Positions 3,254 to 28,076 of a DNA stretch of 64,000 nt are shown here, piece after piece. The stretch spans positions 16,368,001-16,432,000 of the forward strand of contig CP075492.1 of NCBI GenBank assembly GCA_021613535.1. Direction: 5' to 3'. Positions within the stretch are counted from its first letter, which is position 1, and every line of letters starts with the position of its first letter. This stretch comes from Adineta vaga. Lineage: Eukaryota > Animalia > Rotifera. Position numbers and translations under genes: made by a program. The notes beneath the pieces were generated by a model. It worked only from the letters and a program-made list of their open reading frames with translations, did not search any database and was not told where the DNA came from.

Positions 3254-3399
3254 AAGTTGTTGTAGTGAGAGAGGAAGAAAAAGCAACAGATAAGAGAAAA
3301 AAAGAAAAAATGAGCAATCTATATGTATTTTTTTTATATGGGGAACATCATAGATGACTGACCAAGAGTAAGGATAGAGGTATAGATAACCATACGAAT

Positions 3400-4226
3400 A
3401 AACTCCGACCATTGGTATTCCATCTAACGTTGATTTTATCTTGACCTGAGGTTTGATTTTTGATCCTTCTGGAAAGATTATTAACGGTACTGAACTAGTT
3501 GTTTTGTTTAGAGACGGTTTATGACTATTAATTAGTAATGTTTATTATCTCTAGCTATGATGTTGAAATTAGTCCAATCTATTATATGATTATTATTATT
3601 TTCATGTTGTTTAACTGCCGAAAGTGTAAATTTATTTTGTTCCGGTGAAATTTCATCAATTACTATTTCTGGATAATATTGTACTGTTTTATTTTTATTT
3701 CGATCTGAACGTCGAAGATTTACTGAATTACCAATTCCAACTTTGCTATTGGGCTTGGTTATATTCATTGTTTTAAGATCTGCACCGTGTTCTTGTAATT
3801 TCTTACTAGCATGTCGTACTGTTTTACCTATGTAAGTATCATCACAATTAGAACAATCTCATTTATATACAATTTCTGATTTAAGTAGTTTAGGTACCTG
3901 ATCTTTTATTGAAAAGAAACTTGATAATGTTACTGGTGGTCTTTCAATTGGTTGAATATTTATTAATAGGTCTACGGTTTTAGTAATTTTGACTATTTGT
4001 TTTTTGAAAATTTCAGTTGGTTTACCAAAGAATGGTATGTCAAAGAATGATATCCCATTACTTTTATCAATATATCTATCTAAAGTTTTACGAATTTGTG
4101 ACTTTATAAAGGCAACTGGATAACCATTTAATTTATTTATAAATTCAAATTCTTCATTCATTAATTCATACGATGAACAAATTCTGATCGCTCGATATAC
4201 CATGCTACTTAATGTACTAATTTTAT
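3400..4226 (-). pseudogene. Penelope ORF 3' part: RT thumb/linker plus GIY-YIG endonuclease
   Basis: KISTLSSMVYRAIRICSS...NGYP...FFDIPFFGK...KSEIVYK*DCSNCDDTYIGKTVRH...QEHG...SAVKQHE...HIIDWTNFNIIARD. It contains stops and deletions. Confidence 0.88.
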
Positions 4227-4271
4227 GATTTGATGCGTTATAGCGTTTTCCGGGAAACTCAATTTCTAGTA

Positions 4272-5449
4272 GGGAAATTAGGTTCATTAGGGACTTTTGT
4301 TTATGTCTGCCATAATGGACATAATGGACATAATCGAGGATTTCCCAATTTCCATCATGGAAATTAGGTTCATTAGGGACTTTTGTTTATGTCTGCCATA
4401 ATGGACATAATGGACATAATCGAGGATTTCCCAATTTCCATCATGGAAATTAGGTTCATTAGGGACTTTTGTTTATGTCTGCCATAATGGACATAATGGA
4501 CATAATCGAGGATTTCCCAATTTCCATCATGGAAATTAGGTTCATTAGGGACTTTTGTTTATGTCTGCCATAATGGACATAATGGACATAATCGAGGATT
4601 TCCCAATTTCCATCATGGAAATTAGGTTCATTATGGACTTTGTTTATGTCTGCCATAATGGACATAATGGACATAATCGAGGATTTCCCAATTTCCATCA
4701 TGGAAATTAGGTTCCTTAGGGACTTTTGTTTATGTCTGCCATAATGGACATAATCGAGGATTTCCCAATTTCCATCATGGAAATTAGGTTCATTAGGGAC
4801 TTTTGTTTATGTCTGCCATAATGGACATAATGGACATAATGGACATAATCGAGGATTTCCCAATTTCCATCATGGAAATTAGGTTCATTATGGACTTTTG
4901 TTTATGTCTGCCATAATGGACATAATGGACATAATCGAGGATTTCCCAATTTCCATCATGGAAATTAGGTTCATTAGGGACTTTTGTTTATGTCTGCCAT
5001 AATGGACATAATGGACATAATGGACATAATCGAGGATTTCCCAATTTCCATCATGGAAATTAGGTTCCTTAGGGACTTTTGTTTATGTCTGCCATAATGG
5101 ACATAATGGACATAATCGAGGATTTCCCAATTTCCATCATGGAAATTAGGTTCCTTAGGGACTTTTGTTTATGTCTGCCATAATGGACATAATGGACATA
5201 ATGGACATAATCGAGGATTTCCCAATTTCCATCATGGAAATTAGGTTCATTAGGGACTTTTGTTTATGTCTGCCATAATGGACATAATGGACATAATGGA
5301 CATAATCGAGGATTTCCCAATTTCCATCATGGAAATTAGGTTCATTATGGACTTTTGTTTATGTCTGCCATAATGGACATAATGGACATAATGGACATAA
5401 TCGAGAATTTCCCAATTTCCATCATGGAAATTAGGTTCATTAGGGACTT
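4272..5449 (+). repeat. Left subterminal tandem array (~13 units of 84-102 bp)
   Basis: Each unit contains the palindrome AATTTCCAT-C-ATGGAAATT and a variable number of nested 9-bp CATAATGGA repeats. Confidence 0.95.
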
Positions 5450-8400
5450 CGTATAGGGCTGAGGAGATACGTGATATACGATTGAGTGGAAACAATAAAT
5501 TAAGCTGAATGGCACGGTTACGTCTATATTTATCGTCCAAGATTGAAGTGCTGTGTGAGAAAACCTATATTCGATGTCTAAGTGTTTGATTATATACAGA
5601 GAGAGAGGATGTTATTATCGGACATTTCTTTCACCTATGTGTTTTCGTTGTCAATATAGTGTCATTATGGTCGTGATTATGTTTATTTGTTTTTTATTAT
5701 ATGTCGTCTACAATTATCATTTTTTTATTAAGTTTGTTACAGTTTAGCGTTGTATCTTATGGGCTACCTCAAGCGATTGTTGTAGCAAATTATGGAATTA
5801 AAACAGTTTTATTTACATGGAAGTGTTTTGTCAAGGTACATCTTTTTTCATAGAAGCCTTGTATTGTAAGCATTAGTAGTTTTCGAATTGGATCTGAAGC
5901 TCGATCATTGTTGACGGCGTTATCACTTTCGTATCGATGAATGGCTGGCAAAAATTTGGTCAGAGAACTTTGTGGTGTATAGGTTTCTTTTGCTGTTTCA
6001 ACTGAATATAGTGAGGTGGAGAATAGCAATGTAGTTTATCGTTTTTGAATACAAGTTTGTTTTTGTGTACCATGTCGATACTTCAAAAATTATCTAACTA
6101 TATTCAGACTCGTTAATAAAGCATAATATCTTATGTACGTTATACTGACAAATAGATTTTTTATTTTGACATGCATTTGTTGTTGTTAGTGATGAATTAC
6201 AAGCGGAACTATTCCATACTTATAGAAATAATTAGAATCAAATTACATAATGTAGTAAGTTAGTATTATCATTTGATTATAATCTGTGCTTATAGAATTA
6301 TTTCTTTTGAATTCAATTCAATACGCTTTTAAATTAGAGAAAAATTCAAATATTTAAATAGAATACTGCTAAAACTTGTTTAATGATGGTTATTAATGGT
6401 CGAACTAGACACTAACGTCTTCATATTTCATATATTTGCCAATTTATCAATCAAACCCATCTTTCTGGCAAGGTTCAGAATATTTTCAAACGAAAATATT
6501 TCGTTATTTTTGTTCATTCATTTACAGAAGATCGACATTATCAATCATGTCCTTCTTTAATATCTCTACATAATTCGGAATACTATTTTTTGATTGATGT
6601 GCATTGAGAAGTGTTTTTCATTTATGAAAAATATTACAAATTATCTCATCGGATGGTACGTCTTTATTACAAACTGACAATAACGTTGTCTGTAATTTAA
6701 ATATATTTTTGGAACATTGTCTATGGAACTTTCTTCCTCGTCTCCATATCATTCTTCCAGATTTATCATCATCGATGTTTGTAAATACATTCGCTTATGA
6801 ATTTTATCAACGTCAAAAAAAATGCAATACGTCTTGTTAAATATCACAAACAAATTCTTCAACAATCAATGCATTTAAAAATATATGTTGCATATCTATG
6901 ATCAATGTTTATCAAAAAGCAAAATCCACCGCAAAAACTTATTATTTAATTTATCCGATTTCAAATGAAATTTTATGTATGAGAAGTGTTTTAGTGTTTT
7001 GATCGATTCAATTGAATCACAAACACGACATTCATTTATAAATTTTGTTTCTAACATATCAAAATTTATTATTAGTGATTGTGGATCAGAAACAGTAACA
7101 AAATTGTTAAGTGAAAATCGATATTTGTGGTTTGTGATTAACTCTAATAGATTATCAGTCGCATTTGCAATTGACGATATAAAGATGAATTTAAAGAAGG
7201 AATACTTCAACTTATAATTTTCTATATATGTGTACCACAAATACTTTTATATCATTTATTTCAGTAATGCACTGAAACAATTGCTGATGTTGTTAAATTC
7301 TATATGATACTCGAATAGACAGAACCACAACGTTTGTAAAAATCTATTAAATTATATTAATGAAAATTGTTTTTGTTATTTAGAAAATGGAGATAGTCGA
7401 CACCGACATTATTATATAATTCTATCAACAATTACTGAAAATAATATTTTTGAAAATCGATTCAAACTAATGACATCAATGAAGAATGATAAAATTTTAA
7501 TTGATACCATCGATGAACATATTCCGTTATTGCTGAACCAAATTCTGATACTGATCATATTCAATAACAAGAAAAATATTGAATTTGTTGAAAATTATAG
7601 CTATTACTTACTGATGAAAATTATCAATGACCATTAGACAATTCTTTGAACAAGCACGCTCTGTATCAGTATTATATGAATAGAAGTTTTCAAAAAATTC
7701 TTCTTATTTTATTTTATAACAAAATATTTTTTTGTTACAAGCGTGCATTGGCGAATACATTACCGATGGCGTTGTTGAGGACGTAATTCGGCGTTTTTTT
7801 CTTTTTTGGGTGCACTAATCGAGCAAAAGCTAGAAAAAAATGGTTTTAAAGTTATTCTGTTTTATGAAAAGAGAGAAGATTATTCTATTTCTTCTCGTAG
7901 AGAAGAGTCTTTTGAACATAAATTGTTTGCTGAGGGTGAGGGTGTTCGCAGTCGTTATGTAGATGCGGTTGAAGATTATATGTATATATATATATGTTAA
8001 TGAAAGATAACTATTTTGAGTAATACATACATGATAAATTCAAGATGAATTTATACAAAATTTCTCAGGCATGTCTTTATGTACTATTTGTTTAAATCCT
8101 CTTCTTACTATCTAATTAAACATTCGATCGTGTTCAATACTTCATCATAAATCTTGTACTTTTCATCATCAAATGTCAATGTAGGTTTCTGAAAATATTA
8201 TCTAATAAGTTCTTGCAAACAGACCGAAACAAGTCGTAGTAAACTAATACTTATCAACTGAAATGACTAACGTAAATGAAAAAACACACCCAGCTCTTTT
8301 ACCTAGAAACCACGATCTACAGAGTTCACCTAATCTTCTAGTTTATCCGATTTTAAAAATCTGATCTCAAATTCCCGCTCTTCAATTCCGATTACTCTTT

Positions 8401-8599
8401 GATCAATCCTTATGAAATTCTTTAGTTTTCCAAAAACCTGATCTATTTCTTGAAAAACCGATCATCAAAGGAATTCTAAAAGATCAACATCAGATCCATG
8501 ATCCTCAACCTCGACTAACGGTTGATGAAATTTTATAGAAAATATTAATTGATACGTCGTTAATAATTAATTAGTAAAAAGTTTGTATATTAATTAAAA

Positions 8600-9009
8600 C
8601 CGTCATCTGATTTCATCTCACTAACCTCGATTAGTCTTTGCTCAAGTTCTATGAAGAGAAGTTATCTTTGTTTTTAACTTATTCTTCAAGCTTTCAATAA
8701 AATGCGGACATACAAGCAAGCAAATAATTTATTCTTGTAAGACTCTTCTCTACGAACGAGAGAAAATACTTACAACGAATCGCCTGAATTTTAATCGGGC
8801 ATACTGATGAAACACGTTTTCTCGCCCGTTGATTACGTGATGGATATATTTCTTTAATGACCTGGCGGCATGTTGTTGTTATTCTTCCCTTTTTACATCT
8901 TTTTAATTGAATAAAAGATAAACCTAAAATGCTAGCCAGCTTTTTAATTTTCTTTCTTTTTCTTTGTTCTTTTTTCGTTTCTTCATCTTGTTGATGTTCC
9001 TGCTGCTGC

Positions 9010-9052
<43 letters not shown>

Positions 9053-10250
9053 CTGTTGTTGTTGTTGTTCTTCTTCTTCTTCTTCTTCTTCTCCTTCTTC
9101 ATTTCCTTCTAGAAAAGTTGAAAATTTTTTTTAAATATTTGCAGAAAAATTATCGAAAATCACAATGAAAAAACATTTCGATCAATTATAATGTCAAAAG
9201 ACTCGAAATGCATTTTAATCGATTTTTTCTGATAAATTATCAATATGATTCCCATTCTCAGGTATCTAATCTTCATCAACTTTTTTACCAAAAAACATCA
9301 ATTTCAAATCGATTAAAATTTGTTTTGAAATATAATTTTTTTGATATTTCAACTGACTTGAACGAGTTTGATAAATTTCATACTGAATAAGCTAATAAAA
9401 CCATATTCTCATCATTTAATCGATGAAAATCGTTATAAAATTTAGGAAATCGATTAAAATTGATTTCCATTTAAAAAATTAGCTTATATATGTTTATCCT
9501 AGAGTTTAATCGATTGAAACGCATTCTCATTCAAAATATCTATAAATATCAATTACAACTTTGAAATTCAATTATTGTTAATTTTAAAACGTTTGATTAA
9601 TGAAAATAGATTCTGCTATAAAAGTAAATTAATACTTGCTATATAGTAGACTTTAATTCATAAAAATCGATTATTTGATAGTTTAGTTGATGAAGATCTA
9701 TTTTTTAACTTTTTCAATTGGATTCAAATGGATCCAAATCAAGATATTGTCTGTTTTTATTAGATTTATTTTTGGTATCTTAAACACCAGTTATTATTCA
9801 TTATCTTTTGTTATCGCAACAATTCGTCTTTTTAAATTTTTTTGACTTTTGTTCAAACATACCGTTCGATTGATTTACATCAACTCGATGTACACGAAGG
9901 AAAAAATTCCCTGCATCAACTGTTGCCCTATTTTAAAATCATATTGAAAAACGGAAAATAAATATTTTATCTTTAAATAATCTACTTTTCTATCAATTTT
10001 TCTTTGAGATTTTCAATTTCTTCTTTTAAACGTTGATTTTCATCTCTTGACATTTGGAACTGATCTAATAATGTTTCAAATGCTAAGTTTGTGCTTGGCA
10101 ATGATGTTGAATTAATATTATTATTATCATCCTCAATATCTGATGATATCATTATTGATGGTGGTGTATTTGTTTTTTCTTAAGATTTTCTAGAAAATTT
10201 CTTATTATTTATTTTAGATGGTATTTCGAAAGGATTAAAATTCTATTTTA
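8600..10250 (-). pseudogene. Decayed coiled-coil plus BEN-like domain gene (transposon cargo, paralog of 15752-17234)
   Basis: The remnant has a coiled coil (FQMSRDENQRLKEEIENLKEKL), an E/Q tract, then KIKKLASILGLSFIQLKRCKREE/ITTTCRQVIKEIYPSRNQRARKRVSSVCPIKIQAIR. This aligns with the 15.9-16.1 kb exon, with an intron donor at the same position. Frameshifts are present. Confidence 0.55.
9001..9100 (+). repeat. (TTG)n/(TTC)n microsatellite (polyE/polyQ tract of the minus-strand pseudogene)
   Basis: Directly visible trinucleotide runs. Confidence 0.9.
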
Positions 10251-10868
10251 TTTTCTAATAGAAATTAGTTCCCATAATGTCAAATATAGGATGGGAAATG
10301 AAAAATCTGAACTAAATAATATTTATTGCTTTACTTATTCTCAAATGAGATGATAGTACTATTTAAGAAATTAGTTTTCATGATTATATTTTTTCTTGTG
10401 CTAAAATTTGTTACTAATTGTTCAATTAATTACTTATTTTCTTCACGATCGAATATGGCTTCTATGTGTAATGATCTATTTTAATGTCATTTTTTGACAC
10501 AACAAAGCACATTTATATTGTATGTTCATATATTCCTTTTAAAAATACGAAAATATTATCAAATATCAAAATATATAATCAATGAAGCATGTGAGAATCG
10601 TGTTAGTCAATGCAAAAATATAAAAAAATGATCCATAGTTAACATGAGAACATTTCTTATTGATAATGCATTACAATGCATTAAACAAATTCATCAACCA
10701 TCTAATAATTCAGTTCAAACCAGTTATTTATTTTCAATTTCTAGATAACAAATATAGAATCAAACCAAGAAGAAAACAAATGTTCACATGAGATTTTAGT
10801 TATAACAAGAATACAATCTTTAGATTGTTCAATAGGACATTATTAATCACAAATTAATGTAAATAAAA

Positions 10869-13483
10869 CTATGACATATCTTCAGATGTAACATTATGAT
10901 CAAGATCTGATTGATCATCATCCTCATCTTTCTTCAATTCTTCACCATTTAACGTACCAAAGCGTTCGTAAACACATGGTGTCAAGAAAAATTCCTTGAT
11001 TATATCACCAAAACATAGACATCCTAAACCAATTGTTTCTGAATTGATGCCAGTCATTTTGCAGTTCAAAAGATGCAGCATCACCAATAACATTATTGTC
11101 GAATGTGGAAATGAGAAATTTCGTAATGCAAATTTCGCTCGGGATATATATTGAAATGCTTGTTCAGCTGCTTGACTGTTTAAACCAATAAAACGTCCTT
11201 CATGTGATGGGTGATCAGATTTCATAATGGTTTGACACATTGCTCTCGAATGTGTTTTTTGATGGAAGTTATCGAGAGCAAGATGAATTGGAAGCTGTTG
11301 TGTTAATGTCGACGACTTAAGCATATCTGTACCTAGCCATTTATTCCAGTGAAGCTTCAATGTACAGGCGCAGTCATACATGAGCGCATCTGGCATAAAG
11401 CAACCACCAATGATCATGAGTAAAAGATGACGGGTCACTGATCGCATTCCTAGTAAAACATGATAAACGAGACTTTTTCGCATCATTTCAAGATTTGTTT
11501 TAATGAACATACCCTCAGCTTTAATTGCTTCTGTGAAGCCGACAGCAACTCCACATGGATGATATGATGCTAATATGCCATACGTTTTATTTTTTTTAAT
11601 CTCTTCACTATCATTACGATAATTCTGGCATTGAACTTTATGTTCTGAAAGAAAATCTGCATCCCATTTCTAAAATAACAAAAAAAAACATCTTTATATT
11701 AGTAGATGGAACAAAAATCAAGTCTCGTTTTATGTGAGATAAAAAATGTGTGTTAAACTTTTGAGTGCATCAAACTATTGGGCAAGTAGTATTCACATAG
11801 TTGTTTGTATGAAACTCATTTGAGTGAGTTTTTAAGAGTTATTCTACCTTTGAGTGTGAATAATCGAAAGAACTATAATTTATCATATTAATTATTCTTC
11901 TTTATACAACTGTTAAGTTTTGTTTGTCTTAGATGATTTCGATCATAGACTATTTTCAAAAATTAAACGAGAAAAAAAAACTTCGGAGCAACAGAATTTA
12001 TCAGTCTTTAATTAACTGCAGTTGTGTTTATTCATATGTGTATATTTCTACGTTACCTTTAAAGATATCATTTCAAATTTATCCAGTAAACAATGAATGT
12101 AAATTTATGAAAGGTGTAATAAATAGTATTTACGTTATAATCATACTTCGATAGCATATTGGTCGAATGTTTATATGTTGAATACCCTCTGATGCTCACC
12201 TTCTGAAAATGACTTAGTTAACATAATAACGTTACCGAGAATTCAGCAGCCATATCACTAGCTTTTTGTAAATTAAGAGAAGGTGACAAAAGAATTGAAG
12301 GTTGATGATATCGACAATAAATTGCATTAACTAAAATAAAATAATAAAAATACCAGTAACGAATAATTCTATAATTTAAAAATAAATCTTAAATTCTATA
12401 TTTACCTAAATTGGATGATTGTATTCTTCGACAAGGTGTATACGGACAACCAATTTCAATTGCAGTCATTTCTTCAATGGAAGTGTCGACAACGTTTTTA
12501 AAACTACATACTAATCGTCGACATTTTTGATGACCATCCACAATAATACATCGGCTACAGTCTGATGGACAACATTTTATATTTGGAATTGACCTGTGTC
12601 TCGACCAAAATGTAGTGAATAAATGGTACCACCAACCAGAATAGCATTCAAAATGATAATTAAGTTCACTTCGATTAAGTGAAACTGGTAAATTAACTAT
12701 TTGAGTTCGTCCTAACATGAATTCAAAACGTACAATTTGATAAAATAACCAATGACATTGAAATAATTTTGCTAATGGAATAGGTTCAAGAACAATGTTA
12801 CTGTTTTGACGTTCATAATTATATCTATCAATAAGTATTCGACAAAAAGATTGAAATGGACATTGATCATGTAGAAGTTGACATGTATAATCGAAGAAAA
12901 CTGAATATGTAAATGCAAACGAATCACATAAATAAAATACTTTGAGCGTACTATTCAATGATGAATTATTAATCTTTCGCCATCGATTCTTTAATGAATA
13001 CCAAGATGAATGATTATAAATTAGTGTACATGTTTTACACTCAGCAGTTACAGCAACTGCTCGAATGATTTTAAAACAATCAATAATATGAATTAATCTG
13101 TATCGATACGAAGTAAGAGATTTTGTACAATTAATACAAATGTTGGTGAATGGAAATAAGATCATGTCATTTAAAACATTCATTGTAATATGATTTATGT
13201 CAAGTTTGATAACATTTCTGTCAAAATCTGACAGTAATAGTACTCGATTGATCAAATCTTTATTTATTTCAATCATATTTGTCACCATCATAATATTTTC
13301 AGTTGTATGACTGCTGTCATACCGTTCGTTTACTGCTTGTTTTATCAGTTGGGTTCGAGCAGTTGATGATAAAATTGTTGACGGAAAAGTTGACAATTTC
13401 ATATATAGTCGACAAATGTAAACTAGAGATATTAAACCAATGGAACAACGAAGTGCTTCAAGAATATCTTCACCATTTGGCAT
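10869..13483 (-). CDS. KDZ (Kyakuja-Dileera-Zisupton) DDE transposase with CxC5/CxC6-like Cys clusters, multi-exon
   Basis: Motifs in order: CINC...ECKTC..IYNHS (CxC5-like); H..C...C.RCIIVDGHQKCRRLVC...CPYTP...YCRYH (CxC6-like, first D); YGILASYHPCGVAVGFTEAIKAEG; LMYDCACTL; LDNFHQKTH; LNSQAAEQAF. Exons at ~12406-13483, 12236-12330, ~12134-12202, ~11512-11669 and 10869-11450 splice in frame at GT-AG sites. Confidence 0.85.
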
Positions 13484-14387
13484 CTAAAATAATAAACAAC
13501 CTTTAATAAGTGTCCACAATTCACTAGACAAAAAGAATGTATATTTTAATGAGTATCATAAACTTTTCAAAAATATGTCAGTGACTCTTATTGTCTCTCA
13601 GATGAAAAAGGTTGATGGTCTGTGACGCATTGATTTTTAAGATATTTCCATATTTAAGTTCTAAATACACGCTTGCCCTGTGGTTATATAAACTATCAAA
13701 ATTCTATATTGTACACTTGGCAGATGTTCGTTTATTCTATATAACATGTTCAAAAAATAACAATCATATTCATTACAGTATTATTAAACGACTGAGTCGA
13801 CTGACAAAATTATCCCTGCTTTACATCTATATTTACCTTAATTGTAGTATGGAAAATGAAGGTAATGTAGTTGATCAGCCGATTTGTTTTATGTGCACGT
13901 GTTACGATTTGATATTATCAATATGAGAAAAATGTATCTTTCCACGTTCTTAATAAGTTTCAATTTGATGTTTAATTTAAATTATTCATTGTATAATACG
14001 ATAGGCTAAAATACAATTTTTTTCTTTCTGTCCTCCTCCGTCCGTTTGTTTCTTTCTCCGTCCGATTGTTTCTTTTTCTGCCCGTTTCTTTCCTTTCGAA
14101 ATAAGAAATATATTTTTATACAAAACTGATCGATATATTTCCTTTCTTGAACAATATTTTCATGTGCTATAAAATTAATTTTTTATACGAGAAACAAACT
14201 GCAATGACACACAGATCATTTTTTGTAGAACAATTTCTTTTCATGTCAGTGGATGGATATTCACGGCATAATAAACTCTAACGTTTTTTTTCCTTTAAAA
14301 TAAAAATGTATACAAATAGTAATACATCATTAATGAAGATCAATGCATCCTTCACATTGTTTAATTAAAAAAAGTCTTTTTGATGCA

Positions 14388-14965
14388 AAAATCTTGAGTT
14401 TTACTTTTCTGAAATGAAGACTGCTAAAGTAATTCAAAACAATATATATATATATATATATACATATAAATGCAACAAAATTTTCCTCAAACAAATTTTA
14501 TTAACACATTATAATGCATTAATACATTATCGCTGCCTTATTGAAATTTTTTCAAATAATGCATTATAATGCATTAATATGAAATATATTCATGGATAAA
14601 TATATTAGTAAGTAATACTTAATAATAATATACTTGCAATAAATCCATACTGAATCTGACTAGTATGATATTTGAAGGAATAAAGTAATTTTTGTAAGTG
14701 GAAAATTTATTCCAATGTAGGCTAACATTCACAGTAAGATAATTATACACGAACGAAATTTTTTGTACCTAATTAACAGTTGATTATCAGTGTATTCTGT
14801 CATCCGTGAATTTAGTTTACTTCACATGAACGATATTTTTTTTCTGAATGAACAATAAAAATTATTCTTTTATCTTTGTACAGTTCCTAGTGAAATCCTC
14901 TTTGAAAATATATGTCAAGAAAGTTTGAAACTTTATAAATGGTGTCATTTTCTATTTATTCTTTT
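14388..14965 (+). repeat. Diverged internal duplication, copy 1 (copy 2 at ~19098-19725)
   Basis: Collinear shared blocks, e.g. AAAATCTyGAGTTTyACTTT, TATTTGAArGAATAAAGTAATTT, CGAAATTT..TGTACC.AATT.ACAGT and TTTTATCTTTGTACA.TTC. Confidence 0.75.
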
Positions 14966-15751
14966 TTGTCTCAATATATCATTATTAAAATAGATTTGCC
15001 ATCTTTTTAATTTTATTTGATGAAGTCGATGGTGTTCTAATCGTTTCCGGTCACTTTTTGTTTTATTTTTAAATACTATCACCACAATACGTTTCACTAA
15101 TTCAACAGCTTCTTTCATATCAGTTTATCAAATAATGAATAAAGTATATTTTCTTTTTATCACGTGATGTTCTGTATTGACTCTCCAGAAAAAGTGGATG
15201 ACTATTTATCATTCCAAATATGCATCTCACTTTTTTGTGTTTAAATGAATATTGCAATTTAATAAGACTAATAGAACACATGATATGGTTTGCTTTCTGT
15301 TGTTATGCTGTATTCTTTCGTTTAGCTGATGAGAATCACTTACTAATTTTCTTATCGTATCTCTTATCACTAAAATTATTATGGATGTTTCATTGAAAGG
15401 TTACGCAATAAATTGATTTACACATCAAGATTTAAATTAATAGGTAAGATAGATTTGTACTCACAGATAATTGTCAATTCTATTCTTTTTTGAAAATATT
15501 GTTTACTTTTATTAAACTTATGTATCGACGAATCATGTGTATGTTAAATATAACTATTCAATAATAAGTACGTACCATTTGATGTTATTAAAATATTAAA
15601 GGAAAACACTTTCAAGATTCAAAAATACAATAGTGTCTATCTTTTATTTGAGAAAATTTCAAAGTAAGCAAAAACCTATTTCATAGTTATAACAACATAA
15701 ACGATAATGGATATTTTCATAACAAATACTATAGTTTTCCTAAATAGTGTT

Positions 15752-17234
15752 CTATTCTTTATGTTTTTCTGAAGCAAAAACGTTGCCTATGGCATTATTT
15801 AAAAGAAATGTTTTGATATGGCGTTGATCGGGATGTAATAGCTTACTACATTCTAAATCAGTAAAATAATTCTTTTTTTTTACAACAATTATTAGTGAAA
15901 TTACCTCGAATATCAGACTTCTGGTCTTCTGACATTTTCGATAGTTTCATGCTAGCTTGTACATGAAGATCCGGATAGAGACATTTAGTAATCGATCTAC
16001 ATGTTTTTGTAATATCTGTAGTATGTTTACATTTTTTTATTTGACTGATATTTCGTTTTAAACGGCGACAAATTTGTTTCATCTTTTGTTTTCGTTTAGA
16101 TTCTTTTTTGATTGATTTTGTTGGACTAATAGCGTCTGTTTGAGTAAACTGACAAAAAACTTGTGCTGCTAAACCAGTAGGTCTATTTAAAAAAATTTAT
16201 ATTTATTAGATTGATTCAATTAATAAGCTACTTCGGCATCCATTCTGATTTGTAATATTCAATTTCTTTTTTTTGTCGATCATTTTCCTTCAGAATTTCT
16301 TGAACCGTTAGATTAGAAAAATTGATATGGTCGTTTTCGTTCGAACAATCTATAAAATAATAAGTCCATTAAATTCATCTAGGTCAGATTGTTCAAATAA
16401 CAAGAAATGATAAGATATATTAATAAATATCAAGTTTTACACATTAGTTGAATATGTTTGAACGATAAATTTTCTTACTTTCACTGTTATAGTTATTAAG
16501 ACATAGAATTATGAAATACAAACATCTTCAAATGAATTAAATAATATCCTTCTCAATATTTTCGATGAACTATTTGTATTCCAAATAGAATCGACTTCTC
16601 ATGCCTTTTCCAATAACGAAAATGATATAAAAATTTTATTTTTATTTCATTCTGAAAAAAACTCTGTTAATAACGATCAACTTTTATCAATACCTGACGA
16701 CAAAATTATTGTTGAAGAATCTTCATTGTTGAAACTTGGTAATGGTGAAAAGGATGATGATTTATCTGGTGCACGAATAATTTCAATCGATGAGTAGGTT
16801 ACACCTGGCAGAACAGCTAAAATATCAAATGATACTGGATCGATCAGAAAAGTACTGAATCAAGCACATTGTCACTTACTTTGATTTGAACATGGTGATT
16901 GATTTTGATCGTCATCAAAATGCAAAACTTCACACGTAGAGTCAGAATTCGTCGAATTATTCTTCTGATAAATTTTATCAAATTTTGTTGGTTCAATATT
17001 TTTATCCATTGACGATTCATCTTCTTAAAGATAAAAATAAATGACTCTTTCAGTTTTATTCATTTATCGAAAGTAAAAATTTTTGGATGTTTAGTTAGAG
17101 AAAGTTGACTAACCGGATGAATCTAAATAATGATTTCTAACAAAAATCAATCGATGATGGACCTTTTTACATGAATGAGCAGCTTTACGGTCGATCGATT
17201 TTTTCATTTTATTAGATGTTGTTTTTCTTGTCAT
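15752..17234 (-). CDS. Multi-exon coiled-coil plus C-terminal BEN-like domain protein (transposon cargo)
   Basis: Spliced translation: MTRKTTSNK... low-complexity ...QEILKENDRQKKEIEYYKSEWMP-RP...TDITKTCRSITKCLYPD...SEDQKSDIRECSKLLHP...LNNAIGNVFASEKHKE*. The helical pattern matches BEN domains. One internal exon is unresolved. Confidence 0.5.
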
Positions 17235-19097
17235 AATTTTTAAGGAAAAAAATTAATCTTTTAAAATCTAAAATTACAGGAAAATATTATCAAAATCGAA
17301 ATGAATATCTGAAATATAATATTTTGACTACAGATTTGAAGGAAAATACTAATGAACATTCAACAGCAATATCATGTAATTTACTTTCAAAAGTTATGCA
17401 TTTTGTATTGGCACAAAAAAATGGAGGTTATTATATTAATAGATGTCGTGAGAATATGTATTATATCAATTCGTGATTTAATTATTTTGATTTCAACATG
17501 TAATAATACTCAAATAAAATCATATTAACTTGCTAATTTAATTCATTGTTTTTTGTTACATAGAAAGAATATCGATTCTCACATAGTTTAAATATAAAAT
17601 CTTATACTCAGTGAGTCCATAAACGAAACCATAAACATGTTGTAAAAAGAAATGAATATATTCGATAATTATGATCAATGGATTTGATATAATTTCACAG
17701 AACATTTAATTGTCGATTTTTTTCAATGATCCAATGTATCATAGCGTAGAAGTTTAATGAATAATTGCAGCTTCATCATTTCTTAATACCAATGATCTAA
17801 AAACAAAAATTAAAAGAAATGTATGAACAAGAATAATAATGCATGATCATCCATTAAAAAAGAAACACACTGATGCTGAATGACAAGAGACTATTCAATA
17901 TTAAATCATGATGCTTATATTCATTCTAAAAGAATTCTACCACTTAATTCATTTTTTTTCTCATATATAACTAGTGATGAAGAAAAACGTTCAATTCGTA
18001 GCAAAGTATTAGAACGCAAGAATAATAAATAATAAAATAGTTTTTATAATTTTTTGGTTTTTACACTTCTTGTATTATCTTTTTTGTAGTCTAATGATAA
18101 TACATTTTATTGTTGTAAAATGTAAATAAAGAATGCCATTTGAGTCTTTGAATGAAATAAAGAACTATTTTCAGATATATAATCTGCAGTAAATGTTTGA
18201 AGTCTTTTAATATTAAGGTATTCTACAAGGATAAACACTTATGTCAAGAAAATAGCTAATACAGTACCATAAACTATACTAACGAAAAAATAACTAAATA
18301 AATAATTCAAATATTATGATAATCTATAGATAGAAAACAGATTTGTTTACATGCATCTATACACACTCAGTTGGCTCGAGAAATTCGAGAGGCTTTGTGT
18401 TAAGTAATGTTCATCATTTCCTTTTTCCTTTCGTGACTATCTATTTGTTTTTGTTTCTCTTCGCTTCATATTAACATTTTGCTCTTTTTTTTCTTTCTTT
18501 ATCCGAAAAAGCAAAAGGAAAGAAGATATAATTTAACTCGAATGTATTGACAAGAGCATTTTCTTAATGCATCTTTTAATTTCAAATAAGATCAAGTAAT
18601 TTGAAGAATAACTATAAAAACAATAGAGGAATCAAAGGAAATATCACGCATCCATTGTTCAATCACCTAAACATAAATAACTTTCTTTTTCGATCTTATC
18701 AATTCTATAAATTTTATCTTGAATAATTGCTTGTTTCTTTTCACATAATATCAATTTATCTTTAACTATCCATTTTTAATTCAATTTTATCGTTATCATC
18801 ATTAAATCGTTTTTTTTCTTTTTCATCTTCTATGTATCGATCTTTCGTGAACAATCATATACGTGAAGCACGTGTATATTGTTTATAAAGAGAAAACGAG
18901 GAAAAAAGACCTATTTATGCTTGATACCGAATAATTCGTTTTTTTCTTTATAATCAATTTTATACTCAACCTCATATTGACTTTCGAAAAGTGACCTCTT
19001 GGATGAATTTTAGAACCGATCAACATGAGAAAAAAGAAAGAGAAATAAAGATTAATGTATATTCTTGGACGATATTTAATAAATAACTTTTTAATAC

Positions 19098-19725
19098 AAA
19101 ATCTCGAGTTTCACTTTCCTTAAACGATCGCTAAAGTTATTTAAAGTAATAGATATAAGTACATGCAAGATACTCTTCTCAATTAAACGTTGTCAATGCA
19201 TTATAACGCATATTAATGCATTCACATGAAATAATGATTCCATTCAAAGAAGCTTTTTGAGTAATGCATTAAAATCAAATTTGTTCATGAATAAACATAT
19301 TATCCAGTATCAATTAAAAAATAATATGCTTCCATCAAATTCATACTAAGTATGAAAGATAAAAAATAACAATGAACTTTTTGAAACGTGACTGTTTTCA
19401 AAGATAAAATATGACCTGCAAATTATTTGAAAGAATAAAGTAATTTACGTAGATAGAATATTGATTCCAATATTGGTAAATATCCATAGGACAACAAATA
19501 TATAAACGTACGAAATTTCTGTACCAAATTGACAGTCAACTAGTAGTTTATTTTATTATTTATCAGTCTTTTTCAATTCATATGATAAATAGAGTATTTT
19601 CGAATCAAATTAGAAATTCTATTTTTTTATCTTTGTACAATTCTTATAGAATTTTTGTATTGGACTATAAGTCAAAACAAGTTAAATTTTATCAATTGTG
19701 TCACTTTATTTTCATCTATTTTTTT
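19098..19725 (+). repeat. Diverged internal duplication, copy 2
   Basis: Collinear similarity to 14388-14965. Confidence 0.75.
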
Positions 19726-20678
19726 TATATTAAATATAAAATAAAAACGAAAAAAATATAAACTTGTTTCCATTCAATACTATTTCCTTCAGACTTTCTT
19801 AATTCATACAACTATACTGATTATTGAAAATAATGCATTAAATCACATTAAACTACGTTAAAATGCATTAGATCACATTACAGAAAAAAATTAGAACGGT
19901 AATTATTTTTTCTTGACATTCCGTTCTCTTAATTACAAACGATGAACAACTAGTATGTGTAAGGACATGTTTTTGTTTTCTTTCCTTTTCGTTCTTCTCT
20001 CGTTCAATCCTTACACATACGATATAGACGTTCATTTTCTTTTCATTCTGTTCGTTTCATATACACGACGGACGTTCATTATGTATATATGTATATAAAT
20101 GACTATCACGATTCTATAAGTGTGAAGACAGTCATTTTTAATTAATTCAATCATCCATAGGAGGAAGATTTCTGTAAAAAATTTTTCAAGATAAAGTGCT
20201 AAGACAAGTAGTATATTTATTTGCGTTCAAAGAATAGCTTACATATATGATAAAAACGAAAAGGATATATATTCTTTTTATTTCTTTTTTAGATTTCAAA
20301 GATTGTGATCTTAAAAAAAACTAAATCCATATTGAAATTCAACATTGCAAACGTACAATTTATCTATTGGCCTTAAGTTAAAAACAGCAAGTAAGTAATG
20401 CGAAATTTTAATAACAAATTTTACCATATGTATGCTTTTTAGATTTTCTCTTGGGTGAATCAGTTCTCCGATTATTACGTTCTATTTGCTGATATTTTTG
20501 CAGTGTTTTATCAATTACATTTTTGTTAACAGTGAGTATTGAAATTTTGATTATCTTTATGATAACGTTTTTTAAGTCACTTTGATATGAACAACTAGTA
20601 GTGGTGTATAAAGTTTGATTCAAATCTATGCTGTCAGATTTTTTTATGAATGATGAATTTATATTTGTTTTTTTAGAT

Positions 20679-23600
20679 ATGCCGCCTATTAAACCTGATC
20701 CATATGCAGCACAAATCAGTTCCAATATTTTCAAACTAACCAATGCAGCACCAATTCCATTTGAAATGACATCAATTTTTGGTTTATTCAATCAAGTAGC
20801 ATTACTTCGGTTTTTTGAACAACATCAAACATTAGGAGTTGATATTGCTCCATTTGTATATGGTATGCTAGCACATGCAGCTATGATGCTTGATGAAGTG
20901 GAACTTTTGAATCCTGATGGTACTGGCAGTATTACATCAATGAATTTATTTATTCATTTGATTGGTGAACCTGGTGAGTTTCTTTCATTTCTTTCATGTG
21001 TTATTTAATTAATATTGATTTATTTAGGTACCAATAAATCTGGATTATTTCGAGTCTTCAACAATAGCATTAATGCATTGCAAAAAATATTTCCTTCATT
21101 TTTTTCGAAACCGCTTGTGGAGGTTATAAATGGAAAAGAAATATCAACTACAATTGATTTAATGGCAAACAATGAAACAGAATTATCATTATTTCAACGA
21201 CTTTCAAAACGAGTAAGTTATAAGCAGCAAAATTCTTTTGCTATATAATTGGAAAGGATGTTCTTTGGATTTATTTTTTTACAATTATTTCTCTATACGA
21301 TCTAGATATTAACTTCGTAGAGGATGCATATTTTAATTTTTTAAATTATACTTTTAGGAGAATGTATTTATTTCCAGTGATGAACTCGATGTTATTAATA
21401 CTCGATTTGGAGTTTATCAAGCTGGTTCAACAGACAATGATATGAAAACATTTGGCTCGAAACTTTTATGCCAAGGTTATGATATTATGAAGAATGTTTC
21501 TCGTACAACTGGATCTTCATCATTTTTTATTAAACGTGGCTCTATCAATATTTTTGGAGCATCAACAGGCAACATGTTATCATCTGTATGTCGACAATAT
21601 AACAGTAATATTCAATCCGATGGTACCATCAGTCGATATTTATTTATCACAACATCTGTCCACAAAGCTTCAAATAATATACCATCTGAAATTTTATCTG
21701 TACAACCAAATATTGTACATGTTTTAATCGTACTTCGTCTTTTGGCACAATACAAGCCAATTTTTGTATTTGGTGAACATCAATCACCACCTAATTTACC
21801 AAAATTAAGTAAGTTTCTTTATTGGTCGTAAATTATTGAAAGAGCAACATACGAGAGTTTAGTCTAAAACGATCAACAGTTTCAAGAAAATAACTTTGTC
21901 TCTTTCTGATGCTATGATGATGACTTGTAAATTAAGATCGTATAATGACGGTTGAGCATCGACCTGTGAAATCGTTTTGTATCATCGAATCTGTATAACA
22001 TAGTTAATGTTTCAACTATATTTTAAAGAGTTGCAGTTTGATATCGTTTTTGATTAATTTTTTATTCCACATCTATATTTATATCTTTGTCTTTTTGTAG
22101 TTATTGTTCCACCGGACATAGAAGAAGCAAGAAAAAACATCGTGAATCCAATTCCACCAACTGAACCAATATCCAATCTAAAACCATGTGTGGTTGTTGA
22201 CATTAAAGATGCTGATATAGAACAAGATGGATCAATAATATCTGCATACAATGCTATTCGTCGTGTTATTGAAGCTGAACATCAAAAATCATTACAATGT
22301 GATGCCAAAGGAGAACCAATTTATACACCTTTACAACGAGCATTCCAACGGAAGAGTAGCAACAAATTAGCTCGTTTAGCTGGATTATGTCAAGCAATAT
22401 CGTATGCCATTCAATTATGTTCTGAATGTATTAATATCGTTCGATTTGGTGATGGTCTTTATCTTAAAGAGTATATTGATGATGAACAAATTATTTGGTT
22501 AATGAAATTTCATGATAATGTCAAAGTACTTATTGAACGAGATATTACGATAGCTCCGAAATATGGAAGTGATCAACGCCCATTATTTGTTATCGAAAAA
22601 TCAGCTGTACATGCTTCAAACATGTTATATCAATATAATGCATCTACTATTTCGGCTCTTTTCGATGGTACAGCAGTAGATAACAATGAAACAACGAAAA
22701 ATGAAGATAACATTTCGATTAATAATGCATTATCAAACGAGTAAGTCGTATGTTTTTTTTTGAATACTGCTCTCTATTTTATGCCAGAGTTTCTTTCGTA
22801 AAGAACACATAGTTGAATTTCAAACTTTATTTCAGCCTTTTTTATGAACATCAATCCATCTTACTCAAAATGACATCACCAATTGTTATTAAAGCTTGGT
22901 TTAGTAATGAAATTACTGGTCTTCCATTCACCAAAATATTCATCAATTATCGAAGATCGAAAAATAAAATGTCAAAACTTATTCAAGCTGTCGATGAATT
23001 AGTTCAAAATGGTATCCTTAAAAAAGGTGCTAAAGATAATCGACATATTGTTACTGCACGAAAGGAAACTTATTTAAAAGCATCACCGGCTACTATTCGT
23101 GGTGATAACGACATGGTTAATTATCTTCTATCAATTGGCATCGATATTGATACTTATGAACATGTATATCTTTCATCACCATTACCAATGAACATGGAAT
23201 TAACTACATTTGCAGTTAATTCAATTCTATTCGATGATAATTATATTGAATACTGCCACTTATTTAATGACGTTCGTATACAAAAAGAAATGGAAGAACG
23301 ATTATCAAAACATATGGTCGAATATCGTATGTCATTTGGTCAAAAGCAATATTATATGCCATCATTATCTCAAACCGTTGAACAAGGTAAAATTAAACTT
23401 TTTCGAAACGAATAAAACTGTTATTTAATTAAATTATTTTTCACAAATAGATAATTTAGATATTGAAAACAGTCAACAGTATGGCAGTGATCAAACTCCA
23501 ACTAATAATACTGATAATAGTGATAATAATGATAATCTATTATCGACTTTCAGTTTTATTTCACACCGATCAATTGATAACCTATCACCAAACACGGTAT

Positions 23601-25118
23601 CATCTCGTTCCGAAAACGCTTCTCTTTTATCTGAAATATTGAATACAAATTATACTACTGAACCACAAAACAACAACTTTATCGATGAAACAACTGAATC
23701 TATTAATCACCTTCGAAACGAATTGTTACCATCAGTTGATGATATTATGAACCAACTGATAAACATGCTTGATTATGATCCATTAAATATTGAACAATCA
23801 GGTAAGTCTACTTTATAAACTTTAATATTTTATTTAGACAGCATATTGCCACATACTTTTTAGGTTCAATATCGAATACGACAGAAGCTATTCTTGGCAA
23901 TTCAACGTCTTCTTATCGAAATGAATCAACAACAAATGATCAAAAACAAAATCAAAGTCAGAGTCAGATAACAGTTTTATTTTTAAGTATATGAAAAACT
24001 TTTTCGTTATGTTTAGATTGGTCAGTGTTGACTAATATTGAATTATTATCAATTGATAATAATAACAATAATAATATCAACAACAACAACAACAACAACA
24101 ACAACACTGTTTCATCTACTGAACCAACGTCAAATGATACGGCAACATTTTTAGAAAATATGAGTTCTCAACAAACGATGGAACTAATTTCTAACTTGTT
24201 TCAAAATAAAAAACATTTATTAAAACGAATATTGAACGAAGATAATAATGATGTTACACCAAAACGATCAAGAAATAGTGAAAATGAAGAAACAACATCA
24301 TCACTTGTCGACATGAATTTGAGTGGATCACTTTCAGCAACACCTGCTGCAATAGAATCGAATAATATAGTCGGTAAGTTTTGATTCGTTAAATTTCAAG
24401 AAATACTGAAACAAATAATTCTGCATAATAATAAATGCCATTATTTTTTAATTAATATCATTTCTGAATTACAGGTATTTTTTATTTTATGAATTGTTTT
24501 TAATATTTTAGGTGATAATCAAATTGATGATGAAGATCTTCAAGAAGCATACCAGAAAATAATTTTAAACAATGCTATTATTATGTCACGGTCGGATATT
24601 TGTAACAAACTTAAACATATCAAAAACATATCAAAATCACGTGATAATATAATTTCAAAATTAGTTACCGATGAATTATTAATTAAAGGTAATTGGTTTG
24701 CATCGAAAAAAGTAAATGGTAGTATCGATCTTCTACCGGGATTTTTAAAAGCATTTCCGAAAAATAATTCAAAAGATCAACTTGATTTTGCTCGTTTATT
24801 AGCAAAATATAACGTACATTATAATGATTACGAAGAATCATTTAAAAAAAATAAGACCGATACATTTCCTCGTACACTTACTGCTGCTGATGTCAAACAC
24901 AAAACATGGTTATTTTCAAATATGTTATCTGTTTATATTCAAAAAAATGATTTTCTTAATGAACGAATAGTACTTGATCTATCGGCAATCATTCAAGAAA
25001 ATAACAGTGAGTCATATTTTTATTTCATTCATTAATCTTTAGAATTTCTCTTTCATATATAGCTCCACCGATGGCTGTAAAACGTGATCGAAAACCAAAA
25101 CAACGTTATTCACCATAG
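20679..25118 (+). CDS. DUF3987-like P-loop ATPase/helicase with C-terminal winged-helix-like segments, ~10 exons (transposon cargo)
   Basis: The Walker A-like LFIHLIGEPG|TNKS is split by intron 20974-21027. Further motifs are Walker B VFISSDELD, LLCQGYD..KNVSRTT, SINIFGASTG and the Arg-finger-like DGTISRYLF. The exons I checked join in frame up to TAG at 25116-25118. There may be upstream exons. Confidence 0.7.
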
Positions 25119-27407
25119 GACAACAAAAAATGAATTTATTATTGATTGATATCATGTACATATGTAGTCTGCCTTTTTTTATTGTTATTAAAACGATTGT
25201 ACATGTTTGTTTTTCATTTCGTGTGATTTATAACACGTGTGTGCCAATTATGAAGAACTTTTTCTGTGAATCCGGTGTATTTTAACTGTTTTTCTTTATT
25301 ATCGATAATATTTGTATAACGAAACTAATAGTTATTGTTCATTGTATCTTCTATTTTTGTTTTTTTCTAATTTTTCTCTCATATATGGGTGTGATTATTT
25401 TGTAATCATTTATTTTATGTACCTGACTACTTTTTTTCTTACTTGATGGAACTTCGAAAAATACGTGATAAATTCATGTTTGAACATTAAAGTGCTGCAC
25501 AAATAAATTAGATTAAAATAATCTTTTTTCGAAAGTTTTTTTAACATTAACCTGCATATGACTCATTTTGATAGAAAGATACGCGTCAGCGTAGGAGTCA
25601 AGTCAATGTGGATAATGATTATAATGAAAATGTTGATTCTTCTTGACTAATATAACCTTCAGGGCGCAAATGAAAAGAAAAACTTAATTAAAATTTATTT
25701 TCATGTTGATATATAAGAAATTGAGCAGATGTTGCATTATTTAATTTAGATATTCTAGGATCAAGATTTAGAAAAAATATTGGTTAGCTTTAATCGATAT
25801 TGTTTCATAGGATCTACATGCCTCGTGTTGATTCATCTGTGAATTACAGATAGATAAATCTTCTATAAACGAATATTTTTGTTTAATTCTTGTGCATCAT
25901 CTATCATCGCTGTTGATCGTATTGAATGCATTATAATGCGTTATAATGCATTATTATTACATGATAAATAACAAAATCTATATAGCTAAGTATTACATTA
26001 TCATCAAATTACCATCATTAGAATGCATTATAATGCATTCTAAGGAAGATCAATGCATATTAACGTAACAGTTCGCTACTTGATAGCTATTATTTAAGAA
26101 AATTCACAAACTCATGAGGAATTGAATAAATATAGTTTTGTATTGTGATCATACATGAGATTGAAAGAAATTTTGACGATCAACTAGATGCATAAGTGGC
26201 AGATAATAGTATTAATTATAGAGCAACGTTATACAAAGAATCAACTACACAATTTCATAAAATACGTAGTTATTTATCAAATTCAACAAATATAATCAGG
26301 ACCATTTCGTACACTACCTCATCAATAGCAAGAATAATGTTTACATACAGATGATCCTTATAATCTATGAGATTCAAATAACATATTAAAAAATGTACAC
26401 AAATATGAATGTAACAACAGACCGGTAGCTTTGTAATTATCTAGCAGCAAACTATCTTTTAACATATTCTTATCCAAAGTATATGAAAAGTATAGACATC
26501 CATTATTTCATGAATAGTGGAAGAAAAGTATTTGAAAAATAAAACAGTATTTTCGTGATGGATCGTTGAAGTCGTATAGATAAAGACGAGGATAATCTCT
26601 AATTTACAAAATATCATTTTTATATTTATCATAGTAATAAAACAAAGAGAAGCATTGTTATCTGTGAAACCGAAATACAAACTTTGAATATTCGACATTT
26701 CAGACACGTAAATATTGCACTGTCCAGCTTCTCGTACTTCAAGCACTCAATATCATAACATTTAAATCAGATAATCATCGAACTGAGGCATATGCTATAT
26801 ATTAGAGTCGCCTTCACCGTGTCTTTCAAGTGTCAGCTTCATTTTAATGTTTCTTTGTATACCTGACTCTCTCGAAAACGAAAATAACCAGAATTTTGAA
26901 CTTATATTCTCCTTTCAACTACATATCGCTGAGATATTGTTTATAACTATGTATAATTCATCTGTGTATTTCATGCAACTATCGAATAAGTATCAAAAAA
27001 ACTTAATCCTTTACATATGATACATCAGACGGATAACTGACCACAATCAATGTTTGTATTTGATAATAATTTATATTTTGACCTAAATCAAGTATCCTAG
27101 TGATTATGAATTTGATCTCAACATTTTCCGTTCAACTAGTGCGCACGTACCATATGATTTTCGATTTCATCTTCAATTGACGCTATTAATTAATTATTTA
27201 TTTAAATTAGAAGTCGAATGATATCAGTCTTCTATCGGCATGACTCACTCGGCAATTATGACAACGCTGATCTGAATTTAAACCTATGTCTTTCGTCCGT
27301 TAGAAACGACTTTGTAAATATAAACCTTGGACAAAAATTAATAAAATGTGTAGAATATTTAACAAAATATCCACGAGCACAATATTATATCTATTATGGC
27401 AGTCACG

Positions 27408-27834
27408 AACAAAAGTCCCTAATGAACCTAATTTCCATGATGGAAATTGGGAAATTCTCGATTATGTCCATTATGTCCATTATGTCCATTATGGCAGACA
27501 TAAACAAAAGTCCCTAAGGAACCTAATTTCCATGATGGAAATTGGGAAATTCTCGATTATGCCCATTATGTCCATTATGTCCATTATGGCAGACATAAAC
27601 AAAAGTCCCTAATGAACCTAATTTCCATGATGGAAATTGGGAAATTCTCGATTATGTCCATTATGTCCATTATGGCAGACATAAACAAAAGTCCCTAAGG
27701 AACCTAATTTCCATGATGGAAATTGGGAAATTCTCGATTATGCCCATTATGTCCATTATGTCCATTATGGCAGACATAAACAAAAGTCCATAATGAACAT
27801 AATTTCCATGATGGAAATTGGGAAATTCTCGATT
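27408..27834 (-). repeat. Right subterminal tandem array (5 units), inverted relative to 4272-5449
   Basis: Reverse complement of the left array unit, with the same palindrome and 9-bp subrepeats. Confidence 0.95.
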
Positions 27835-27965
27835 AGGTCTAAAATTGCTACTTAGACTATTAGAACTGTTTGGAATAGAATTTTTTGAATTTCCGGAAAT
27901 TCACCTGATACCCGAAATACATGCAATTTCCAGGCAATCGCTATAACGCATCATATGAATTTTAT

Positions 27966-28076
27966 AAGAATGTGGAACAAAAGATTTCCATTTAGTTATT
28001 AAACCTGTATATTTTGGCTTTCGATATATCGTCGTAGAAAATGAATTAGTGAACTCAGTTGTATTAATAATGGCTA
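27966..28076 (-). pseudogene. Penelope RT C-terminal fragment, upstream continuation of 3400-4226
   Basis: Translates as ...FSTTIYRKPKYTGLITKWKSFVPHSYK, the typical PLE YRKPxxTG motif. Confidence 0.88.

Follow-up and report, generated by a model that had tools for sequence, protein, structure and literature searches.

We analyzed a 64,000-nucleotide stretch of contig 3 of the bdelloid rotifer Adineta vaga (C3:16368001-16432000; hereafter called "the window", to which plain coordinates refer). It contains a single mobile element of 23,731 bp, at positions 4227–27957, with a transposase gene on the minus strand, an ATPase gene on the plus strand, inverted repeats at its termini and inverted tandem arrays just inside them. 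The element sits within the remnant of a Penelope-like retroelement, and its exact ends are confirmed by the observations described below.

The element is bordered by two identical copies of an 8-bp target-site duplication (TSD), AATTTTAT, at 4219–4226 and 27958–27965. The left end starts with GATTTGATGCGTTATAGCG, and the right end, when reverse-complemented, starts with CATATGATGCGTTATAGCG. The terminal inverted repeats (TIRs) extend over 4227–4257 on the plus strand (GATTTGATGCGTTATAGCGTTTTCCGGGAAA) and over 27927–27957 on the minus strand (reverse complement, CATATGATGCGTTATAGCGATTGCCTGGAAA); they are imperfect, with agreement at 26 of 31 bases and an exact core of 15 bases. The left subterminal tandem array (4273–5449, plus strand) is composed of about 13 units of 86/95 bp, each including CATAATGGA 9-mers and a TTTCCATCATGGAAA palindrome, which are candidate transposase-binding sites. 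The right array (27384–27839, minus strand) is composed of about five units in the inverted orientation relative to the left array, and the two arrays form inverted arms of up to 456 nt with 96% complementarity. In addition, we searched the genome (six contigs, 100.8 Mb) with the terminal sequences. The left 64 bases have 17 matches, all beginning at the first base of the query, the right 78 bases have 20 matches, and the other family copies lose similarity exactly at the ends of the element.

The interrupted host lies on the minus strand. Its downstream part (3535–4218) bears a GIY-YIG-like motif (CSNC...YIGKT...EH, within 3535–3858), and its upstream part (27966–28104) provides 49 open codons in the frame shared with the downstream part, upstream of which the frame is broken. 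The protein-atlas neighbors of the remnant include a eukaryotic cluster with PF01541, while a Pfam search of the remnant gave no match and no reverse transcriptase part is kept upstream. When the element and one TSD copy are removed, the right flank (...SFVPHSYKI) continues into the left flank (STLSSMVYRA...) in one frame on the minus strand. Moreover, six paralogous copies of the host lack the element; there the flanks adjoin, sharing exactly the 8 bp of the target, which is present once. The flanks are thus joined with a single 8-mer in all six paralogues, which fixes both boundaries of the element to the base. An earlier note on this DNA, made from the sequence alone, had described the exact 8-bp TSD, imperfect TIRs of about 30 bp, inverted subterminal arrays and an insertion point defined by the restored Penelope reading frame. 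All of these descriptions are borne out, and the six empty sites are stronger evidence for the insertion than the frame restoration. Beyond the insertion site, positions 28078–28355 of the right flank repeat 3057–3428 in inverted orientation (87–89% identity). The latter lies some 0.8 kb outside the left flank, so that the insertion site is enclosed by an inverted repeat within the host remnant.

Could the junctions be an artefact of misjoined repeats? The arrays beside both ends are repetitive and hard to assemble, and no single read contig crosses a junction with at least 31 bases on each side. Against this, a 209-nt Logan contig from an independent run is identical to the window over 27930–28138, crossing the right junction. 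DNA runs from five studies, dated 2013–2022, contain about 90% of the words of the element interior at 16500–25100; none of the listed runs containing this interval is recorded as RNA. The perfect TSD, the complementary TIRs, the in-frame host and the six base-exact empty sites likewise oppose a misassembly, which we consider extremely improbable. Several read contigs track the terminus and diverge immediately after 27957, as expected from the other copies of the family.

The junction contig has a depth of 52, compared with about 51 for nearby homozygous contigs and about 31–33 for each allele of a heterozygous stretch. Since this depth is at the diploid level and no loose-ended contig was observed, the laboratory lineage seems to be homozygous and fixed for the insertion. 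Just outside the element, the contigs of runs X1 and X9 have 13 other bases in place of 46 in the repeat at 29973–30020, and the 2013 run X4 adds CAACAACAA at 30026. These differences are allelic or strain variation.

The transposase gene (10869–13483, minus strand) has four exons encoding about 636 amino acids. Pfam matched neither of its two large minus-strand frames, 12392–13483 and 10872–11669. As read from the sequence, the exons span 13483–12406, 12330–12236, 11669 to about 11509, and about 11445 to 10872; they join in frame across GT-AG introns of 75, 566 and 63 nt. The exons were searched one by one, the joined model being our reading of the sequence. An exhaustive search of 1.84 billion representative proteins yielded 88 relatives, and all of those with a named organism are from bdelloids—A. 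steineri, A. vaga, Rotaria and Didymodactylos (one paralogous protein, P0008, is A. vaga UJR12515.1). The link to the KDZ (Kyakuja-Dileera-Zisupton) superfamily runs through these relatives. When the PF18758 model was run across the genome, a paralogue at C3:18357592-18358137, which is 41% identical to the transposase (E 7e-36), scored 32.1 bits against a cut-off of 26.6. Among 27 aligned homologues, 14 match PF18758, with a best E of 2e-11. A distant relative, P0088, reaches 41.4 bits with PF18758, and 22.3 bits with CxC5, below the cut-off of 26.9.

In the alignment of these homologues, D99, D133, H136 and H140 are invariant, and C102, C145 and E169 are nearly so; the window protein has all seven. 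Upstream of them lie conserved CxxC...CxxC clusters. The block C-x2-C-(3)-DG-x-K-x-R-x-VC in exon 1 is conserved, the aspartate of the exon 1 "VDG" is probably the first catalytic aspartate, and the small exon carries a YCRYHQP motif. The AlphaFold model of the core has a predicted local distance difference test (pLDDT) score of 74, exceeding 85 over residues 70–210. In an exhaustive structural comparison, 27 of the 29 best matches are DDE integrases or transposases (Z 4.1–6.5), including the ASV, PFV and HIV integrases, ISCth4, TnsB, IstA, Hermes, Tn5, Mu and Mos1. Our assignment to KDZ is transitive, by way of intermediates, yet solid. On this basis the protein belongs to a divergent, bdelloid-restricted branch of the superfamily, and the transposase is apparently intact, with all of the conserved catalytic positions present.

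The second gene (20679–25118, plus strand) encodes a DUF3987-type P-loop/AAA+ ATPase, a putative helicase, of 1084 amino acids in ten exons. Plus-strand frames span 20619–25032, and the annotated spliced product P0151 (I4U23_016134) maps in ten exons, separated by nine introns, to 20679–25115. P0151 matches PF13148 with 32.9 bits (cut-off, 27) and its orthologues with 30.4–36.2 bits, while the single exons reach a sub-threshold 16–25 bits. The Walker A motif GEPGTNKS is divided by an intron (GEPG|TNKS), and the Walker B motif is FISSDELD; the corresponding motifs in the ATPase of a second lineage are AGSDKS and IMHEAD. Pfam searches with the C-terminal segments gave no match, PDB sequence searches with the ATPase found no relative, and PHROGs searches with its exons and P0151 gave nothing useful. 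The AlphaFold model (pLDDT 48) is unusable for a fold search. Introns with GT-AG borders are present in both genes, in agreement with the spliceosomal introns inferred in the earlier note; the transposase has three and the ATPase nine. The ratio of nonsynonymous to synonymous substitutions (dN/dS) is 0.14–0.23 for the transposase, measured against a copy on contig 2, and 0.09–0.20 for the ATPase. As these ratios, 0.09–0.23, show, both genes are under purifying selection. In A. steineri, two loci (L024:10054-10952 and L025) hold ATPase fragments in which the ~295-nt intron of the window (about 21808–22102) is shrunk to 13 bases, with no transposase nearby. These fragments could reflect intron loss, or be processed or decayed copies.

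Next, we examined whether the two genes belong together. The pair occurs at least at eight loci, in A. vaga, A. ricciae, Rotaria magnacalcarata and two further ENA assemblies. At three other sites in A. vaga (C3:15.25 Mb, C2:16.21 Mb and C6:13.84 Mb, the first two examined as 3.3-kb pieces), distant ATPase paralogues (24–29% identity) lie 1–6 kb upstream of likewise distant transposase paralogues (23–37%) on the same strand. The A. ricciae locus (L040) has the same gene order, between inverted arrays of ~83-bp units and with ordinary host genes around; its exact ends were sought but not defined. The order of ATPase and transposase in R. magnacalcarata (L041) is that of A. ricciae. The pair of the second lineage is 60–79% identical across genera.

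Two complete elements of the window's own lineage were found on contigs of the two ENA assemblies. The first (L046, 405–20034) is 19,630 bp long, is flanked by the TSD CAAAAAGT and has the transposase followed by the ATPase. The second (L047, 7213–18631) is 11,419 bp long, is flanked by AGAAAGCG and has the ATPase followed by the transposase. Their transposases are 51–56% and 37–39% identical to that of the window, respectively, and their ATPases 44–67%. Both elements have inverted subterminal arrays, the CATAATGGA 9-mer recurs in L047, and the termini have the motif TCCnnGGAAA in common. On one R. magnacalcarata contig, a left-type terminus comes after a complete ATPase gene of this lineage. 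When every open frame of the window element was compared with the complete elements by tblastn, only the transposase and the ATPase were conserved. Because the ATPase is paired with the transposase in every lineage examined, and because both are conserved in the complete elements, these comparisons argue that the ATPase is a core partner, inherited and co-diverging with the transposase. The description of the element as "cargo-carrying" in the earlier note is therefore not upheld, while its expectations of the same gene set elsewhere and of further copies with different 8-bp TSDs proved correct: the set occurs in the complete elements and in other bdelloid genera, and the copies are L046, L047 and the six short derivatives described below. 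In L047, positions 7336–8539 and 16750–17953 form a 1,204-bp inverted repeat with 100% complementarity; if it is not an assembly artefact, it is a terminal inverted duplication of great length.

The rest of the element, about 13 kb, has no conserved gene, as judged by tblastn against the complete elements; it is non-coding filler that varies between copies and gives the size range of 11 to 24 kb. The AT-rich interior at 6103–10868 shows no protein-level conservation and has 66–84% DNA identity with two copies on contig 2, an A. steineri contig and a derivative on contig 6. Within this apparently non-coding but conserved left interior, positions 8988–9110 contain long runs of TTG/TTC triplets, which would encode poly-Q/poly-N if the minus strand were coding, and a protein-atlas search of 8697–8957 gave no usable match. 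The segment at 16585–19517, in which no gene was recognized, has weak periodicity only and no long frames, and is 78–84% identical to a relative on contig 6. The BEN-like proteins that had been proposed for the element were not recovered: no BEN profile matched the open frames of at least 75 amino acids or the orthologous C-terminal segments at E values up to 0.1. A weak DUF4806 match (18.7 bits) was not reproduced in the orthologues.

These interior sequences bear on a composite origin, in which an element of about 10 kb, with the ends and the transposase, grew at a later time through unrelated insertions or the capture of host DNA, the ATPase being an accidental passenger. The two closest transposase copies, on contig 2 (92–95% amino-acid identity), have only 6103–14447 in common with the window, the interior segments have their own diverged paralogues elsewhere, and intron 2 and other spacers vary in length between copies. 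However, the equivalents of 7668–9924 and 16585–19517 are directly joined in the transposase-deleted relative on contig 6, so the latter segment is part of the family's own sequence, not a nested insertion from outside. Moreover, no additional family termini lie inside the element, complete elements with TSDs of their own contain both genes, and the ATPase adjoins the transposase at no fewer than eight loci in at least four genomes, with parallel divergence. We therefore consider a composite origin very unlikely.

The contig 6 relative lies at C6:13835742-13852438 (L027–L030), with its left end near 13852438 and 66–84% identity to the window, and adjoins a much more divergent pair of ATPase and transposase genes; the region is to be read as a single mosaic element, or else as two elements, one of which inserted beside the other. 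The two contig 2 copies, at C2:256-7989 and C2:245860-257050, are in opposite orientations near the start of the contig, one of them being cut by the contig end, and may be a subtelomeric inverted duplication.

Has the family been mobile? The right-hand 3.1 kb of the element (24842–27957) is 98–99% identical to a fragment at C1:16073176-16075836, which ends in the same terminus and has a different flank; a left end was looked for there and not found. In addition, at least six short derivatives, of about 0.33–3.6 kb, have both ends. Their TSDs include the exact pairs TGTCAAAC, ATTGAATT, CAAAGTGT and GAATAGAA, and two more match at 7 of 8 bases. These short derivatives are non-autonomous. At C1:17607455-17637644, three ~330-bp derivatives sharing these ends are spaced by exactly 14.93 kb, indicating that the short element is part of a ~14.9-kb tandem repeat present in three or more units.

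Such copies speak to a further alternative, namely that the element is a domesticated or immobile relic, in which the gene pair serves some function of the host cell and is kept for it, the termini being fossils. Several observations would fit this alternative: the purifying selection on both genes and the 60–79% identity of the second lineage across genera, the low copy number, the apparent homozygosity of the insertion and its presence in runs dated 2013–2022, and the fact that neither expression nor polymorphism was seen. By contrast, the loci of the pair are not orthologous, as their flanking genes and TSDs differ, and inverted arrays always flank the pair. The intact ends and clean TSDs of the short derivatives and the nearly identical fragment at a second site also disagree with a relic, and the insertion interrupts another transposon rather than a conserved host locus. 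We regard domestication as unlikely.

Taken together, the element is very probably an autonomous-type member of a bdelloid clade of KDZ DDE cut-and-paste transposons, and it entered a Penelope-like retroelement in a single 23.7-kb piece. The TIR-bounded, KDZ-type DNA transposon of the earlier note thus holds, on the strength of the ends, the 8-bp TSDs and the KDZ link through relatives. Several results weigh against this interpretation. The transposase exons themselves have no PF18758 or CxC match in Pfam at E values up to 0.1, nor does PF18758 match the transposase with the in-frame intron removed at E values up to 1. The proposed KDZ assignment is supported transitively, through the homologues that match PF18758, and not by the window exons, which match no Pfam KDZ or CxC model; for the CxC domain, the observations are the conserved cysteine clusters and the sub-threshold CxC5 match of P0088. 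A Foldseek search of PDB with the core model returned nothing significant, and the structural Z-scores are modest, although the list of matches is coherent; the modeled core resembles DDE integrases. The two contig 2 copies have no detected right end or ATPase. The empty site that the earlier note had suggested looking for on the homologous haplotype was not seen: no read contig has a loose end before 27958, although contigs cannot prove the absence of an empty allele, and paralogous empty sites were found instead. No expression was observed in four added runs (one guessed to be RNA, three of unknown kind), which contain 0–3% of the words of 16500–25100, and we saw no evidence for present activity of this copy. 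Finally, the full 23.7-kb version is a single copy in this assembly. The giant multi-gene family envisaged earlier is confirmed for the recurring transposase and ATPase pair, but no other coding segment is conserved among the complete elements and the full-length version stands alone here.

How would such a transposon move? Transposase binding: The N-terminal cysteine clusters of the transposase would bind the repeated TTTCC...GGAAA palindromes in the TIRs and the subterminal arrays. Transposition: The transposase would then pair the ends, excise the element and integrate it across an 8-bp staggered cut, and the short derivatives would be mobilized in trans. The ATPase may act as an element-encoded accessory factor, an AAA+ regulator or target selector like MuB, TnsC and IstB with the bacterial DDE transposases; alternatively, it may be a helicase that unwinds or replicates the element DNA. 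The role given here to the ATPase is wholly inferred, which also counts against the interpretation as a whole.

A further step, which we hold to be less likely than not, is that the clade would be a eukaryotic two-component DDE transposon, in which a DUF3987/MCM-like ATPase of phage or bacterial mobile-element origin would be required for transposition, either as an AAA+ regulator or target selector corresponding to MuB, TnsC or IstB, or as a helicase enabling the unwinding or copying of very long elements. If this is true, then the requirement for the ATPase would explain how elements of 11–24 kb remain mobile. The bacterial partners MuB, TnsC and IstB govern target choice and immunity. To our knowledge, no eukaryotic cut-and-paste transposon has been shown to need a dedicated ATPase. 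The transposase and ATPase pair, co-inherited in several bdelloid genera and under purifying selection, offers a concrete system for asking whether the bacterial ATPase-partner logic exists in animals. In addition, a DUF3987 helicase-like protein is now placed in an animal mobile element, which bears on horizontal gene transfer in bdelloids, and a family for which we found no name in the bdelloid literature searched now has exactly defined ends, a known TSD length, gene models and a set of non-autonomous derivatives.

In the literature on Zisupton/KDZ elements in rotifers and on DUF3987 in transposons, we found no description of this architecture, in line with the earlier note's view that it may be undescribed in animals. 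KDZ elements do not figure in a review of giant eukaryotic transposons (PMC6431247). Zisupton and Dileera elements generate 8-bp TSDs and Kyakuja elements 7-bp TSDs (PMC12730594), and animal Zisuptons are multi-exonic (PMC9297572). The rotifer elements resemble the Zisupton/Dileera elements of fish, nematodes and fungi in the PF18758-related DDE transposase, the N-terminal cysteine clusters, the TIRs, the 8-bp TSDs and the multi-exon genes found in animals. They differ in that the rotifer transposase is shorter, about 636 residues versus up to 1,400, is too divergent for a direct Pfam match, and comes in every case with a DUF3987-type ATPase encoded by a gene of its own. Moreover, they have long inverted subterminal tandem arrays and lengths of 11–24 kb, and bdelloid rotifers are the only organisms in which their clade was seen. 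In fungi, KDZ elements carry TET/JBP dioxygenase genes, which are reported to have passed between transposon superfamilies (PMC12730594). These fungal elements likewise hold a second, functionally distinct gene inside their TIRs (PMC12730594), whereas the rotifer partner is an ATPase or helicase instead of a DNA-base dioxygenase, present in all of the clade lineages examined and co-diverging with the transposase.

DUF3987 proteins are putative replicative helicases of superfamily 6 (SF6; MCM-like) from phages and mobile elements, often encoded beside primases and ending in a C-terminal winged helix (PMC4889955, PMC5862659). A survey placed the DUF3987 family in bacteriophages, and divergent SF6 helicases were "curiously" undetected in eukaryotic viruses (PMC4889955). 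The rotifer ATPase is like these proteins in its above-cut-off PF13148 match, in having both Walker motifs, and in extending at the C-terminus into the place that the winged helix takes in the phage proteins (PMC4889955, PMC5862659). Unlike them, it is much longer (1,084–1,164 amino acids), is encoded by an animal genome, has nine introns and no primase found beside it, and has a transposase gene as its partner, not a replication module.

The pairing itself recalls Mu (MuA/MuB), Tn7 (TnsB/TnsC) and IS21 (IstA/IstB), in which an RNase-H-fold DDE transposase also lies beside a dedicated P-loop/AAA+ ATPase gene; the structural comparison with the rotifer transposase core matched TnsB, IstA and MuA, among others. 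In contrast to these systems, the rotifer element has a eukaryotic host and intron-containing genes, the ATPases have no sequence relationship, and a regulatory role in the rotifer would be one of analogy only. Teratorn, Polinton/Maverick and Helitron elements also exceed 10–20 kb and carry a helicase or ATPase gene besides the integration enzyme (PMC6431247). The rotifer element, however, has no viral structural genes, polymerase or HUH nuclease, owes its size mostly to non-coding filler, and belongs to another transposase superfamily. The superfamily is a known one, and what is new is a bdelloid clade of elements up to 24 kb long that combine 8-bp TSDs and long inverted subterminal arrays with a transposase and a DUF3987-type ATPase.

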